A stretch of 64,000 nucleotides of DNA from Selaginella moellendorffii (GCF_000143415.4 NW_003314356.1:620001-684000), one strand, 5' to 3'; shown: positions 2,542 through 9,550, counted from the stretch's first letter. Notes: generated by a model not told the origin, from the letters alone. Made by a program: numbers and translations.

Positions 2542-3633
2542 ATGCTCCTTCGATTCATCCTCGCGATCGCTCTTGTGATCGCAGTAGACGCACGGGCGTC
2601 GGGAAAGGCGGACTACGAGGTCTCGGCGAATCCATTCTGGCGATCCAGCGACGCAGTGAGCACTAGCGAGCTCGTCTCTAGGATCCACGAATTCCGAGAT
2701 CGATACAGGCAGCTCCCGGAGGAGCACAAGCGGTGGGCGAGAGAGAGCTATGGCCCCGAGGCTCTGTTGCAGTACCTCTTCCAGGTAAACAAGATCGAGG
2801 GAGAGGGATTTGACACCTTTGAGGAGACGAGGGAAGCCATTCTTCGGGGCAAAGCTCTTGAGCTGGGAGATGTGATTCAATCCGATAGGAGGCTGGAAGC
2901 CGTGCGCTGCCTCGACCGAGCCTTGAGGATTTTCCTCCCGGATCACCAAGAGAATGGCACAGTGGTCGAGCTCCTCAGTGTTCCAAAGATCTTGGAAGCT
3001 CACCAGGAGCTCATGGCGAGCACAAAGCCCGAGTTTGCAGCACACTTGAGGCGAGAGATGCACGAAGTGGTGTTTACCAGGACGCTAGCGGGTGGAATTC
3101 ACGTCTTTTTGTGGCCGACGCGAGTGGAAGCAGCGCTGGAAGAGCTGGTGGCGAGCTCCAACGAAGAACTCAAGGAGCTCATCGCCATCGACGAGGCGGA
3201 GTTCTCGGCCGAGAGCTTGGAGGCGATCCTCAAGTTTGGTGCCAGGGTCTTCTTCGAGTTTGAGAACGTCCATCCTTTCCTGGACGGGAATGGCCGGGTT
3301 GGGAGGATCGTTCTGGCAGCACTCCTTCGCAGCGTGATGCCGTTTCCCAATGTTCTCCTCGTGGAGAGAAGCGATGGCAATGCGGATGAACCTCCTTTCG
3401 TGGACAAGAGGGACTACTATGAATGTTTCGCTAGAGCTCAGGAGGAGCAAAAGTTTGAGATGGTTCGCAGCGATGGCGCTGGTGCCTCTCGGATTGTGGT
3501 GGCGGAGGAGAATGTTGCCAATGCCAGGATTTATCCTCCAGCGGATCTAGCTGCGCTGGTTATCGAGGGAGTCTACGTTGGATGGAAGAGATTTTTCGAT
3601 GCTCTTGGCTCTCAAAGTTTTGCCACCTTCTAG
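2542..3633 (+). CDS. Intronless Fic/Fido-domain protein with N-terminal signal peptide (Fic-B), 363 aa
   Basis: Hydrophobic leader MLLRFILAIALVIAVDARA; intact HPFLDGNGRVGR at 3271-3306; VNKIEGEG resembles the Fic regulatory helix motif (S/T)xxxE(G/N). Confidence 0.92.
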   Translation: MLLRFILAIALVIAVDARASGKADYEVSANPFWRSSDAVSTSELVSRIHEFRDRYRQLPEEHKRWARESYGPEALLQYLFQVNKIEGEGFDTFEETREAILRGKALELGDVIQSDRRLEAVRCLDRALRIFLPDHQENGTVVELLSVPKILEAHQELMASTKPEFAAHLRREMHEVVFTRTLAGGIHVFLWPTRVEAALEELVASSNEELKELIAIDEAEFSAESLEAILKFGARVFFEFENVHPFLDGNGRVGRIVLAALLRSVMPFPNVLLVERSDGNADEPPFVDKRDYYECFARAQEEQKFEMVRSDGAGASRIVVAEENVANARIYPPADLAALVIEGVYVGWKRFFDALGSQSFATF

Positions 3634-3700
3634 CCTTGTAAAAACATGAAATTTTTAACTGTCGTTGAAATGATCAAAGCTCTACAAAGAAGGAAAAGAC

Positions 3701-5818
3701 TTAACTTTTTTGCAAAGTTTCCATAAGCATCCTTGCTGCCGAGTCTTTGGCCTTGTTGATCGTAGGCCTTGGCTGACCGATGCATTCTTGTTTCTCTCCT
3801 TGCTCGATACGAACCGATGCTGTGCATGTAAACATCTTTGCGTGGGCCGGCCCGGTTTCACTGTGTGTGCTGCAAAACGAAGATCGATAAAAAGATGGAG
3901 AAAACTAGAAACTTACTTGTAGTCTGGACATGGCCAGCCTCTCTGAGAGCACAGCTCATGTAGCGCCTGTCTTGAGAATTCTCCACTCGTTTTTTCTTCT
4001 TGAGACGGTGTTAGAGGGGACGCGCTTTTGTCGAGCTTCGCTATTGCATTGATGGCCGCCAGCTTCTTCGCCATCTTCTTTTGGACGTTTGTACCACGGC
4101 CGAGAACTTTGTTTCCGACGAGAGCCCTGGCTAGGAACAGATCCCCGGACAAGGAGTAATCCCATTCCAGTTTTTTCATGTGCTTGTCACAGAGCTCGTA
4201 GAGCTCGCGGACTGGATGGATTGGAACTGCTTCTGGTGTCACCAGCGGCTGTAGCAATGGCTCAAAAACCTGCGATTTCATGTTTAAGAGAAAGAAAGGA
4301 AAAAAGAAAAACAACAGACCTTCCAGACTTGATCCAAGTTTAAGCCACTGTCAATGTAGAGTGCCCCAACGAGTGATTGGAAAACATCTCCTAACACCTT
4401 CGGTGCCTTGACAGCTCCAAAACCATACGAATAGATGGCATTCTCTTCCATATTAAGCGCATGTTTCGCATAAGTTTTTATCTGCGCTGCAAAGGAAACT
4501 ACTCGTCAAGAAAAGAGATCAACAACTTACTTGAGAGTGGAAGTCATTCGATTCGTGCAAGATATGAGCATGGAGCTTGTGCTTGACCATTGCTCGAGCA
4601 AAACTCTCGCTGTTAAGAGCTGCACAGCGCAAGTCTGTCAAGCGCCCGGGATGTAAGTCCTTGTAGGAGAAGTATATGTGCCTTGTCAAGAGATGGTCCA
4701 GCACAGCATCACCTATAAACTCGAGACGCTCGTAAATAGGAACCATGGAAGCTTGCCGAGAAGAAGAGTGCGTGAGAGCCTGAGCGAGCAGATTTCTCGA
4801 TCCAAAACTATACCCGAGTGTGTTTTCCAGCCCCTCAAAGTCGATCGAATTGAGAACCTCTGGAGAAACAACACTTCCAGCCCTGGCGATCTGGAGCTCG
4901 GCATCGCTAAAGCCTGTCTCGATACCAAGCCACTCCACTACGTGCCGAGCACCTTTGTCGCCATGGTGGACGTAGTAAGCTCCGATCAGTGCTTCCACCA
5001 CGTTTGCCAGGACTTTACTTGAGAGCTCTTGGAGATCCGTGGGCTCTCTTCCAGGCACGAAAGGATTTATCCTCACGTAAGTCTCAAGTCCTTTCTCCAA
5101 GGCAAGGTAGTGAAGCGCCGAGTTTGAGATGATCTTTCCACGCGTGATCGTGAGCTCTCCTTCCGGAAAATCTGAGAACTTTAGATAGAGTCTGGTGCTC
5201 ACGGCCCACTTGAGATACGCATCGCCGAGAAGTTCTATGCGCTCGTAGCAGTATGGCTCGTGACAATTAGCAGCGGTGAGAGCTTCCAAGATCTGCAAAC
5301 AGAAGAATTCTATGAGACTGTAGAGAAAACAAGGAAAGAAATCAGACCTTTGAAGCGGGGATGTTGTAGTTTATTGCTTTTCTCAGCTGGATAGCCTGCA
5401 TCATACGCTCCACCCGGTTCCTCAAATGTGGGAGCTTCTCAGTCCCTTTAGATACAAGCTCGGAAAAATTATGGATAAAACCAGCATCAAATTCTTCTTG
5501 CTCATCTAGCGAGAAATTCCAAAAATCACGACATAAAAATCTAGCTCGCAGCTAAACCTGAGAAGAATATCAAGTTCTCACCACGAATTCTCTTCCAAGG
5601 CTGCTGCTGCTGCTGGCCCGACTTGTAGCAGCAGAAGAAAACCACAAAACTCACAACCAAATTCCACTTACTAGTCTCGAATGGCGCCGACGACGAGCAT
5701 GCTCTGGCGCCGCGCCACCGGGAGCGCAGCGCTCGAATTCTCGGAGAAAATCTGTGCTGGAGCTCCAAAGCCTTGAAACAAGGCAGTGGATTCGCGAGGA
5801 GCATACCGCCCTCGTCAT
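3701..5818 (-). CDS. DCL1-derived protein: two RNase III domains plus two dsRBDs, no helicase, DUF283 or PAZ
   Basis: LPHLRNRVERMMQAIQLRKAINYNIPASKILEALTAANCHEPYCYERIELLGDAYLKW closely parallels the DCL1 RNase IIIa entry; second domain ERLEFIGDAVL...KAPKVLGDVFQSLVGA; dsRBDs HPVRELYELC and SRQALHELC...GPAHAKMFTC...KAKDSAA; stop at 3701-3703. A consistent 7-exon model starts at ATG 5818. Confidence 0.85.
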
Positions 5819-5877
5819 AAACCCTAGCGAATATCCCCCAAACGAAGATATTTTGAATTTGGGCGCCAAGAACACCC

Positions 5878-8800
5878 TCACCGGGCGTGGGGTTGGGCGA
5901 AGACCGAGCTTAGATCCATGGTCGACCGTGGATTTCTGGGCGCATCCAGGTGGTAGGGAGTTCCCGCTGCTGCTGCCCGCGATGATTCTACGTCATCGTC
6001 GAATTGGTCGGGATTGTGTGGTTTTGGCGATGATTCGAGGCCGACCGGCTCTTCTTCGAGATCCAGAGCCTCCTGGAGCTCGCGCGCCACCTCCGCCATC
6101 GTTGGTCGATTCACCCCATGCGGCTCCACGCAATACATTGCGATCTCGCCGACCTTCCACAGAGATTCCATCCGGGGAGCGTCGCCAAGCGCTGGATCCA
6201 CGATGCTCTTTATGTCCCCCTTTTGGAGAGCCGCTCGAGCCTGGAAGAAGAAGAAGAGGAATCCATGAGCTCGATCGAAGAAGAACTACGCGAGAGATCG
6301 CACTGACCCACTGGACGATGTTGGATTCCGGCTCGAAGAGCTCGGGACTGAGAGGCTCTCTCGCGGAGATGGTCTCGAGGAGAACGATTCCAAAGCTATA
6401 GACATCGCTCTTCTCGGTGAGGCGTTGGTTCATGTAGTATCTGCGAAGAGAGGATCGAGCTTTAGAGACAGAAGTAGAAGAAGAGAGAAGAGCTCTTACT
6501 CGGGATCCAAGTATCCCACTGTTCCTTTGACAGTGGTGGAGACGAGGCTCGACCCTTCCGAGGTCATTTTGGAGAGGCCAAAGTCGGCAACTTTGCCAGT
6601 TTTCTTGTCACTGATGAGAATGTTGCTGCTCTTGACATCTCGGTGGATGATACTCGGATTGCATCCAGTGTGGAGATAATCCAGGCCTGGATAGAAGAAG
6701 AAGAAGATAAAAAAAGTTCTTTTTGGACAACTTCCAGACCTTTTGCTGCGTCCAAAAGAACTTTGAGCCTCGCAGTCCAGTCCAGGACGAGTCGATCTTC
6801 TTCTTTGGCTGGCAAAGAACAATAAAATCTTAGCACTTGTGCTTTGCTCGATCTCCAGAATCACATACCGTAGAGGCAATCTCTCAGCGTTCCTATGTGC
6901 ATGAACTCGTACACGAGGATTCGTTCTTTTCCTTCTTGGCAAAATCCCAAGAACGAAACCAAGTTACGGTGGTGAATGCGAGACAAGAGCGTTACCTGAA
7001 AGAGCTCAAGTTCATTGAAAGATCCAAGAGGAAGAAGAAAGAACTTACTTCGTTGGAGAATTCTCTGGCTCCTTGGTGCGACGTCGCTGATAACACTTTG
7101 ATCGCAACTTCTCTGCCGTTCTTGAGCCTTCCATAGTAGACAGTTCCAAAACCACCGGAGCCAATCTTGTTGCCAAAGTTGTTTGATGCTTCTTTCATCT
7201 CTTGGAACGAGTAGCGATACGCATCGCTTGGTTGCTCCTGGACGAAGCTCCCACTGTCGGATCCGTGAGACTGGTGTGTAGAGATCATGGACGTGAAAGA
7301 GTCCGCTGCTAGAGAGTTTTTGCCTTCGTTAGAGACGAAATGGAAGAAACCAGAGAACGAAACTTTCAGGACTTACGCTGGTCCGCAGTAGTTTTTGATG
7401 GAGTGCTTGCCTTATATGATCTCCGCTTCTTTCTCAAGAACACGAAGTATATTGCTGTTGCTGCTCCCGCGCAAAGAATTATCCCTCCTATCAATCCACC
7501 AACAATTCCTCCGATAACTCTCGATCGTGAGTAATTGTTCGAGCAATCCCTGGTACACAGGTTTGGATTTCCAGAGTACTGGAAATCCAAGCCACGCCTG
7601 TTTAGAAGGTCCTCGGGTATACTTCCAGTTAAAAGGTTGTTCTGGAGGTATCTAGCAACAGGAGAAATGAATGGAGTCTGTAAAATAATTGGATTGACAA
7701 GAGCTACTTACAGTAGTTGGAGTGTTTGTATATTTTCGAGAGATTCCGGAAAGTCTCCGCTAAGACGATTGCTTTCGAGATGCCTGGAACTTAGACGCTC
7801 AAAAACCTCCCTAGGAGAATTCACTAAACTTACAGTTGTCTCAAGACAGAGAGTCGACTCATATCGGGTATAGAACCTGACAAGGAATTGTTTCGGAGAT
7901 CTCTGCGGGAAGAAAAGAAATGTAAGACGTGAGATGAGAAACAAAACTGGACGAAGATCTTACAATATGTTTAAGCCTGTCATTTGAGAAACACCAGCAG
8001 GGATTGTACCATTCAAGTTACTGTTTGGAAGTATTCTGTTCAGCACAAAAACAAGCTTCGAACTTGAACAAAACAATGGTAAACATTTTCAAAGCTTACA
8101 TTCCATTAACTCTCGGAATTCCATCGTTGCTGCAAGTTATCCAGTCCCACATCACGGGAAGACATGGATCTCCCGTCCCAGAGAGTCCAAACTGCTGAAT
8201 GAATTGGCCGAGAGAATTCACTGCAAAAAAAGGATCATATGAAATGAAAGCGTAGAAAATGAAGAACTTGAGTACCATCGTCCAAGTTTGTGGGAGATTG
8301 CCTGTTTACAATCCTCAGCACCTCCATGGCGTTGAGTATAGGACCCAAGTTTGCCTCCGCCGTTCTCTGGAAAGCAAAGTTTATGATTCCAGGCAAAGAG
8401 ATGTTGTCATATCCAGGTTCGTAGGCTTGAAACGCACCGATGTCATTCCGGAGGTTCACAACTTGGTTTCGAAAGAACGTATCGCTGGGCAGGATGAAGG
8501 TGAAAGCTCGAACGTCGCTGGCTCTCAACTCTTGGATCTCCGCAAAGTAAGTTCTTCCGAAAGCAAACGCCGGGAACTCTGGGATGAAGTAGCGATACGT
8601 CAAGCTTCCATTGGATCCCACCACTGCGGTTTGCATGACACGCTCGGGAGGCCTCTCGGCAGCCGTATCCACTCCTACCGTCGAAGTTGTGTTCACTCGG
8701 ATCGTCCCGGGAGCTTCCGCGGCGAGATTGTTTGGCCTGGTAAGATCCGACTGCCATCTTCGATCGACTATATCATCCGGATACCTGAAAGTTTTGCTGC

Positions 8801-9550
8801 AAAGTTGTAGAAAGGAAAAACTCTGGTGATTTTTCTTACCTCACGTCGTCGGTTGTGAGAGCTCCAAAGTTGATGCGAACGATATGTTGGAGGTGAGCTC
8901 GACCTTCGTATGGAGCCGAGTACATGGATCCAATCAGTTGTCTAAGCTCGAGAGTAGAGATAAATGGAACTCCAGTTCCTCCACTCACAAGACAAGCTTC
9001 CAGCGTCGATCCGGGGGAGAGAAACAGCATCTCCACGAAAACTTCACGATTGATATCTTCCACCCTCACTTCGGCCCAGCGCGTAACGTTGAGATATATG
9101 GTAAACTCGGGAGCAGTGTTTCGGCCATCGTAGTTTCCATAGAGAAAAGTTGCTCGGATGAGATACCGCTGGCTGGCATTCACAGGAAGCGAGTAGCAGC
9201 TCTTGCGATCGGGTCCAGGAAAAGATCGAAGCTGCCTGTATGGATTCCGGACGGAAGAGTTTGATACCTGACGGATGACGCTGTTACTTGCTCCACTCGA
9301 GAGGAAGAAAGCGTCTGGCTGCCACCGAATTCCGGTGGCTGGATCCGTGTAGCTTGCATTCGCTCCACAATCCAAGCTCAAAAATCCTGCCAAAAGGATA
9401 CAAAAGTTCCTTGCTTTAGAAGGGAAGAACTTCAAGGTAGGGGAAGAGATTTTCTTCTCACTCACCTGGTTGAGCTGAAACTTCGAGGCTAGTTTGATGG
9501 ATCACGAGCGCGACGAGCGAGAAAAAGAGGAGGAGAGAGATTCGATCCAT
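5878..9550 (-). CDS. Malectin-like domain LRR receptor-like kinase (LRR-I type), multi-exon
   Basis: Signal peptide [16 protein letters not shown]; GFLSLDCG and [13 protein letters not shown] (malectin-like); GDPC motif; short LRR exons; TM helix; kinase motifs [34 protein letters not shown]. Confidence 0.92.

Follow-up and report, generated by a model that had tools for sequence, protein, structure and literature searches.

A DCL1-clade gene of Selaginella moellendorffii without helicase and PAZ domains and with one altered acid in each RNase III centre

What is left of a Dicer when everything in front of its nuclease domains is missing? The question is raised by a minus-strand multi-exon gene at positions 3701–5804 of a 64,000-nt stretch of Selaginella moellendorffii DNA (GCF_000143415.4 NW_003314356.1:620001-684000; this whole stretch is called the window), which corresponds to RefSeq XP_002989272.2, a protein of 608 amino acids (AA) named 'endoribonuclease Dicer homolog 1'. 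The original prediction, made from the DNA alone, saw here a mini-Dicer, the C-terminal half of DCL1, fused to a mitochondrial-presequence-like leader and retargeted to an organelle. In this work we find that the gene does encode the back half of a DCL1 and that no transcript contig joins the proposed leader to it. We propose, with a probability of about 0.55, that the gene is a helicase-less and PAZ-less paralogue of the DCL1 clade, altered in both catalytic centres, whose product would bind double-stranded RNA (dsRNA), or the substrates or partners of DCL1, without dicing, as a decoy or a cofactor. The gene exists and its architecture is indeed unusual, but it had been annotated before and belongs to a described class, since stripped-down DCL1-clade genes such as mDCL and MpDCL1b are known (PMC10721683, PMC5144951, PMC13738684, PMC11799827). 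New in this analysis are the double active-site substitution, the unproductive splicing and a counterpart in Diphasiastrum. Because of the existing annotation, the described class and the failure of the organelle claim, we consider the finding to be of moderate value.

Domain content and the two nuclease centres

In an exhaustive protein search the main exon gave a single match at 100%, the 608-AA protein XP_002989272.2 (P0121). In a search of solved structures, this protein matches Arabidopsis DCL1 (PDB 7ELD) from its residue 85 to its end, over DCL1 residues 1316–1906 (E = 5e-145); the homology starts at the post-PAZ connector and continues through RNase IIIa, RNase IIIb and two dsRNA-binding domains (dsRBDs) to the C-terminus. 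Pfam Ribonuclease_3 is found in two stretches (E = 1e-41), that is, RNase IIIa and IIIb in tandem in one chain, and dsrm is also found in two stretches (E = 4e-16), the second dsRBD matching DND1_DSRM (E = 4e-14) as well as PDB 2LRS, which is dsRBD2 of DCL1. No Pfam match in the protein corresponds to a PAZ, helicase or Dicer-dimer (DUF283) domain, and tblastn with three DCL1 proteins revealed no helicase or PAZ remnants, as it found DCL homology only at 3707–5479 of the 64-kb window. The window therefore contains no helicase or PAZ exons. Such exons would also have no room, as originally predicted, given the 59 nt that separate the stop codon of an upstream kinase gene on the same strand (TGA 5880–5878) from the ATG proposed there as the start (5818–5816). 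AlphaFold2 predicts the RNase III and dsRBD domains with local confidence scores (pLDDT) of 80–96. Across these domains 55–66% of the columns that are at least 95% conserved in DCL1 are kept, and the long insert of DCL1 RNase IIIa (DCL1 residues 1441–1494) is cut to about 5 AA.

The best matches of the protein are all DCL1 (49% identity in ferns, 43–45% in angiosperms), while DCL3, DCL4, DCL2 and RTL proteins match far more weakly. It falls in the DCL1 clade, and not with RTL proteins, in four trees (support 100/100, 100/99, 99/100 and Shimodaira–Hasegawa-like 100), which comprised Riccia fluitans P0187 (KAL2622282.1) as the sole mDCL-type sequence compared and were computed without canonical lycophyte and bryophyte DCL1, Physcomitrium (P.) patens mDCL and MpMDCL; its branch is very long (1.1 changes per site). 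A homology that begins after PAZ, a DCL1-clade support of 99–100% and far weaker RTL-type matches all support the view of this protein as a mini-Dicer made of the DCL1 C-terminal half, with an architecture unlike that of canonical DCLs.

Each nuclease centre of this protein carries one substitution. RNase IIIa reads LANVVEAL where canonical DCL1 rows of the alignment read LAD.VE.L (mostly LADVVEAL), and RNase IIIb reads GDVFQSL where they read.D..ES. (mostly GDIVESI). The residues concerned are Asn224, at the position of the metal-binding Asp of IIIa (AAC codon, 5002–5004), and Gln416, at that of the catalytic Glu of IIIb (CAA codon, 4377–4379). Both are present in the two haplotypes, and all canonical DCL1 rows that cover these columns have Asp and Glu. 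The IIIb position is a Glu in 174 of the 180 fetched RNase III proteins, and a Glu-to-Gln change occurs there in only one other fetched family, that of the Riccia mDCL-type protein. Each centre still has three of its four acids, and the RNase III fold is retained, as are the dsRBD signature residues. Both substituted positions are metal ligands in RNase III. A Gln at the position of the IIIb Glu gives the classic form of bacterial RNase III that binds RNA but no longer cleaves it; the same change eliminates cleavage by human Dicer, and it lies at a DICER1 hotspot. Given an Asp changed to Asn in IIIa and a Glu changed to Gln in IIIb, the protein is predicted to be a non-cutting dsRNA binder.

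These properties suggest a model in which the gene has retained, of a DCL1, no more than the post-PAZ connector, the two RNase III domains and the two C-terminal dsRBDs, and in which one metal-binding acid of each nuclease centre has been turned into its amide (Asn224, Gln416). The protein, if made, would most likely bind dsRNA, or substrates or partners of DCL1, without dicing, and its role may be that of a decoy or a cofactor in the small-RNA machinery, not that of a nuclease. Translation would start at ATG 5804 and not at 5818, the short N-terminal extension would be an orphan peptide confined to this lineage, and the gene would begin within the 3' end of the kinase transcription unit upstream or immediately after it.

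Transcripts and the N-terminal leader

The DNA here is eukaryotic and its introns measure about 50 nt; the reading frame was pieced together on the minus strand. It comprises an annotated first coding exon (5582–5804), an exon for the post-PAZ connector (5348–5505), in which the DCL1 homology starts (AA 85, DCL1 residue 1316), and a main exon (4531–5292) that encodes RNase IIIa and the N-terminal two thirds of RNase IIIb (Pfam Ribonuclease_3, E = 7e-34, and alignment with 7ELD). The C-terminal part of RNase IIIb follows in a separate exon (4320–4481; Pfam E = 9e-5 for this piece alone), then dsRBD1 and the start of dsRBD2 (3917–4269; Pfam dsrm and Dicer_dsRBD), and the last exon (3701–3869) encodes the remainder of dsRBD2, of the DND1_DSRM type in Pfam, up to the stop codon (TAA, 3703–3701).

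Evidence from RNA was obtained from Logan contigs of four runs (X1–X4) mapped to 3301–6900. These contigs skip GT..AG introns and hence are derived from RNA, and they retain majority paths only. Four of the five coding-region introns are backed by spliced contigs in all four runs: a 76-nt GT..AG intron (5506–5581, joint 5505/5582), a 55-nt intron (5293–5347), a 50-nt intron (4270–4319, placed at 4268–4317 by the contig alignment) and a 47-nt intron (3870–3916). The first of these is also covered by unspliced contigs, in X1 (5477–5611) and apparently in X4 (depth at 5531). The remaining intron, 49 nt at 4482–4530, lies inside RNase IIIb, which stays in frame only if this intron is removed. X1–X3 retain it, which leads to a premature stop (...HSQVSC*). 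In X4 a 32-nt skip (4499–4530) leaves 17 extra nt and results in a frameshift and a stop; X4 carries the single-nucleotide polymorphisms (SNPs) of the other haplotype, on which its skip is 44 nt, owing to a 12-nt insertion in the intron. Most assembled mRNAs of the gene are thus unproductive, the 49-nt intron being either retained or mis-spliced. The haplotypes differ in this critical intron by a 12-nt insertion or deletion, TAGTTTTGTTTG (window ~4507; ~5298–5309 in L001, the locus of the other haplotype), which makes it 49 vs 61 nt, and each haplotype gives its own aberrant splice outcome at 4482–4530 in the contigs.

At the 5' side of the gene no contig of the four runs has a splice between 5582 and 6239, and the contigs are continuous from the gene into the last exon of the kinase. 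A single contig joins kinase exons and the mini-DCL in two runs, so the two transcription units overlap or read through; contigs do not separate these two cases because the same contigs run on into the convergent downstream gene. By its own terms the original prediction would fail if the transcript started elsewhere or included further upstream exons, and this is what we see in part, the continuity with the last kinase exon being the part concerned. It had also described a first exon rich in Arg and Ser. The corresponding open reading frame (ORF), MTRAVCSSRIHCLVSRLWSSST..., is present, and its first 22 residues include neither Asp nor Glu, but it is not joined to the RNase III frame. In the absence of any splice in 5582–6239, the frame opened by ATG 5818 ends after 55 codons, at 5651; this ORF (5651–5818) is out of frame with the gene, overlaps ATG 5804 and is at best an upstream overlapping ORF. 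The fusion to a presequence-like leader and the resulting organelle retargeting are not supported as proposed, as the exon in question and its ATG are unspliced to the gene in every contig. The RefSeq start is ATG 5804 (5804–5802), in a different frame; it opens the only frame that fits the RefSeq protein, and this frame runs unbroken through the 5582/5505 junction found in four runs. A seven-exon model starting at ATG 5818, with a 50-nt GT..AG intron at 5622–5671 that is in frame on paper, was rejected, as no contig splices there and RefSeq uses ATG 5804. The acid-free, Arg/Ser-rich composition of the ATG-5818 ORF is not beyond chance: among 1023 ATG-opened stretches of 22 codons in the window, 22% have neither Asp nor Glu, and 1.9% combine this with at least nine Arg plus Ser.

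The annotated leader of 74 AA has a net charge of +11, a hydrophobic run of 14 residues (AA 47–60) and a poly-Gln. The first 46 AA of the ATG-5804 frame are Ser-rich and contain 7 Arg, 2 Lys and 2 Glu (net +7); a composition like that of the annotated leader is found in about 3% of the comparable open ATG stretches of the window. Its helical hydrophobic moment is at most 0.31, and AlphaFold2 gives a pLDDT of 23–30 for residues 1–98, with a single low-confidence helix of 8 residues in the leader. No Pfam match was found for the leader and, the CAG repeat excepted, no similarity in the window DNA or among all fetched proteins. Non-coding DNA here, GC-rich at 56%, yields peptides rich in Arg, Ser and Ala when translated in more than one frame. 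Of the three differences between the haplotypes within the leader, two are synonymous, at third codon positions of the ATG-5804 frame, which lends weak support to this frame as the coding one. Organelle targeting by the annotated leader is unproven and, from these features, appears unlikely. The CAG repeat (5597–5611, minus strand) encodes QQQQQ in the leader and QQQEQ on the other haplotype (SNP at 5606), where the contigs break; a poly(A) site considered at these breaks (5607–5611) was dropped, since they coincide with the SNP.

Relatives of the gene and competing explanations

Non-seed plants carry several stripped-down DCL1-clade genes, and the Selaginella gene adds a form that has both RNase III domains and both dsRBDs, minus PAZ and one acid per centre. 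With canonical DCL1 (7ELD/7ELE) it shares the connector, IIIa, IIIb, dsRBD1 and dsRBD2 in collinear order, with 44–49% identity to fern and angiosperm DCL1. It differs from canonical DCL1 by having no helicase, DUF283, PAZ or IIIa insert, by the replacement of one catalytic acid in each RNase III domain, by an orphan N-terminus of 74–84 AA and by its very long branch. The mDCL class is defined by PAZ and two RNase III domains without a helicase (PMC5144951, PMC11799827, PMC13738684); the P. patens mDCL, which has no helicase and carries PAZ and RNase III, affects 23/24-nt small interfering RNAs (siRNAs) (PMC10721683, PMC5144951). The Selaginella protein resembles mDCL in being helicase-less, in having two RNase III domains and in clustering with DCL1, but mDCL has a PAZ and no second dsRBD, whereas the Selaginella protein has no PAZ and both DCL1-type dsRBDs, and its 44–49% identity to canonical DCL1 compares with 35% to the Riccia mDCL type. 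The Riccia protein P0187, with PAZ and two RNase III domains, also has a Gln in place of the IIIb Glu and likewise a short IIIa insert; the common Gln would be a trait of one family or a result of convergence. A truncated S. moellendorffii DCL that clusters beside mDCL was published in 2016 without a gene identifier and may not be this gene (PMC5144951). Marchantia has, besides MpMDCL (Mp6g09830), MpDCL1b, with one RNase III domain and two dsRBDs (PMC13738684, PMC11799827); MpDCL1b is debated as a pseudogene or an old gene (PMC13738684, PMC11799827) and is diverged but open and expressed (PMC13738684). Proteins of this type (Mp7g16380 type; P0363 of Marchantia paleacea and P0305 of Riccia fluitans) are also C-terminal fragments of the DCL1 clade, with two DCL1-type dsRBDs and neither PAZ nor helicase. 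The liverwort proteins, however, keep RNase IIIb only, with its Glu intact, whereas the Selaginella protein also keeps IIIa and has a Gln in IIIb. P0363 and P0305, of 464–512 AA, have one RNase III domain (IIIb) and two dsRBDs, which fits the published MpDCL1b architecture.

The RTL and RNC1 proteins are likewise small RNase III proteins without helicase or PAZ. RTL proteins form a separate lineage, with E = 7e-48 for RTL2-like and 2e-39 for RTL3-like matches vs 1e-150 for DCL1 fragments, a direct comparison that did not include RNC1. RNC1 acts in an organelle, and neither of its two RNase III domains is catalytic. A counterpart was found in Diphasiastrum complanatum (KAJ7535022, P0273, 609 AA), as a DCL1 back-half gene on CM055103.1 (L002, 8001–13699) with an intact ORF; the 8 kb that precede it contain no DCL exons. 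This gene is truncated at the same point (DCL1 residue ~1336) as the Selaginella gene and encodes an identical set of domains, the same IIIa Asp is replaced in both (by Lys in Diphasiastrum, by Asn in Selaginella), and its IIIb and dsRBD intron positions are common with those of the Selaginella gene; one of its exons spans DCL1 residues 1336–1691. It differs in that IIIa has lost three acids (ELLGG, LAKVVEGL) but IIIb is intact, in that the long IIIa insert is kept, in that it starts 8 residues before the DCL1-homologous part, with no N-terminal leader, and in that it is not the sister of the Selaginella gene in the best tree. In approximately unbiased (AU) tests a clade that unites Selaginella and Diphasiastrum is not rejected (p = 0.18), nor is one of Selaginella and the Riccia mDCL type (p = 0.19); the best tree places P0187 outside. 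A tree of the C-terminal region alone leaves every non-canonical form, the liverwort MpDCL1b type among them, in a basal polytomy of DCL1. If the Selaginella and Diphasiastrum genes represent one old lycophyte lineage, they would provide a natural cleavage-impaired Dicer and a handle on decoy tuning of microRNA processing.

The proposal of a non-dicing dsRNA binder has to be weighed first against that of a gene in decay, in which a partial DCL1 duplicate placed behind the kinase gene would ride on its read-through or overlapping transcripts, with both active sites lost, mostly mis-spliced and giving no functional protein. We consider this explanation possible though rather doubtful. In both haplotypes the ORF runs intact through 608 codons in six exons, without a stop or frameshift, although it has diverged from DCL1 by about 50%, and such integrity at 45–50% DCL1 identity argues for long purifying selection; the share of highly conserved DCL1 columns still present and the intact ORF of the Diphasiastrum counterpart, with its same truncation point, also speak against decay. 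Several observations weigh on the other side, against a functional protein. An in-frame splice of the 4482–4530 intron was seen in none of the four runs, within what majority-path contigs report, and the 608-AA protein may therefore be produced rarely or not at all. The haplotypes differ by 7 non-synonymous and 5 synonymous changes (dN/dS of 0.41), for which neutrality is not rejected (p = 0.11). Word-index and exhaustive searches found no orthologue in other Selaginella species, only the Diphasiastrum gene and DCL1 fragments appearing. Decay would account in addition for the premature stop in the dominant contigs of both haplotypes, for the partial retention of the first intron, for the contigs that join kinase and mini-DCL, for the alteration of both catalytic centres and for the very long branch. 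A minor productive isoform is possible, because the contigs hold majority paths only. If the gene is decaying, it would be an example of a gene fragment surviving on the transcription of its neighbour.

A last point that weighs against a strictly non-cutting protein is that Asn and Gln could still permit weak metal-dependent cutting. The protein could then be a specialized small nuclease with residual activity in one or both centres, which would nick or slowly cut dsRNA without end measurement, like the PAZ-less ciliate Dicers. The fold and the acids kept in each centre would allow it, IIIb is fully intact in Diphasiastrum, and minimal DCLs are treated as functional, as for the action of P. 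patens mDCL on siRNAs (PMC10721683, PMC5144951). We nevertheless judge it improbable: both centres are affected in Selaginella, and both at metal ligands, the IIIb change being one that abolishes cleavage in other enzymes. Still less probable is the import of the Dicer fragment into mitochondria or plastids by an N-terminal presequence, where it would act on organellar RNA as RNC1-like proteins do. The loss of the DCL1 N-terminal part and the basic, Ser-rich N-terminus followed by a hydrophobic run, uncommon among comparable stretches, are in keeping with import, but the ATG-5818 exon is not joined to the gene, the helical moment and the pLDDT of the leader are low, and GC-rich non-coding DNA yields Arg/Ser/Ala-rich peptides in several frames. 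Moreover, the leader has no homologue and is missing from the Diphasiastrum counterpart, and the protein is of DCL1 origin and not of the RNC1 or RTL lineage. A variant that we hold to be very improbable is that the annotated leader is a newly evolved bipartite targeting signal, made of the Arg-rich stretch and the 14-residue hydrophobic run, which would direct the back half of a DCL1, dead for cleavage, to an organelle or a membrane, where it would bind dsRNA; Selaginella would then have an RNA chaperone of its own, derived from a Dicer and similar to RNC1. Taken with this evidence, the reading that we prefer is still that of a paralogue of DCL1 that would bind without dicing, and whose product we infer to be non-organellar.

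The locus and its neighbours

A literature search by accession numbers for the gene found no paper, and older partial models of 524 AA exist. A copy on a second scaffold (XP_002965641.2, locus L001) is 99% identical and has the same neighbours as in the window, a 962-AA malectin-like LRR receptor kinase whose end lies 73 nt ahead of the ATG and, on the other side, a convergent gene; we therefore identify this copy as the other haplotype. In the window, the upstream gene (5878–9465, minus strand) is an intact malectin-like LRR receptor kinase, whose TGA (5878–5880) also lies 73 nt before ATG 5804. The convergent downstream gene (2542–3633, plus strand) ends 67 nt from the mini-DCL stop, and the same RNA contigs span both genes (3301–3869), their 3' ends thus overlapping on opposite strands. 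Contigs back three introns of the kinase gene (6240–6306, 6441–6499 and 6686–6738), and near 6806–6868 a further intron, about 60 nt long, has two alternative junctions. The contig depth over the kinase is at most three times that over the mini-DCL.

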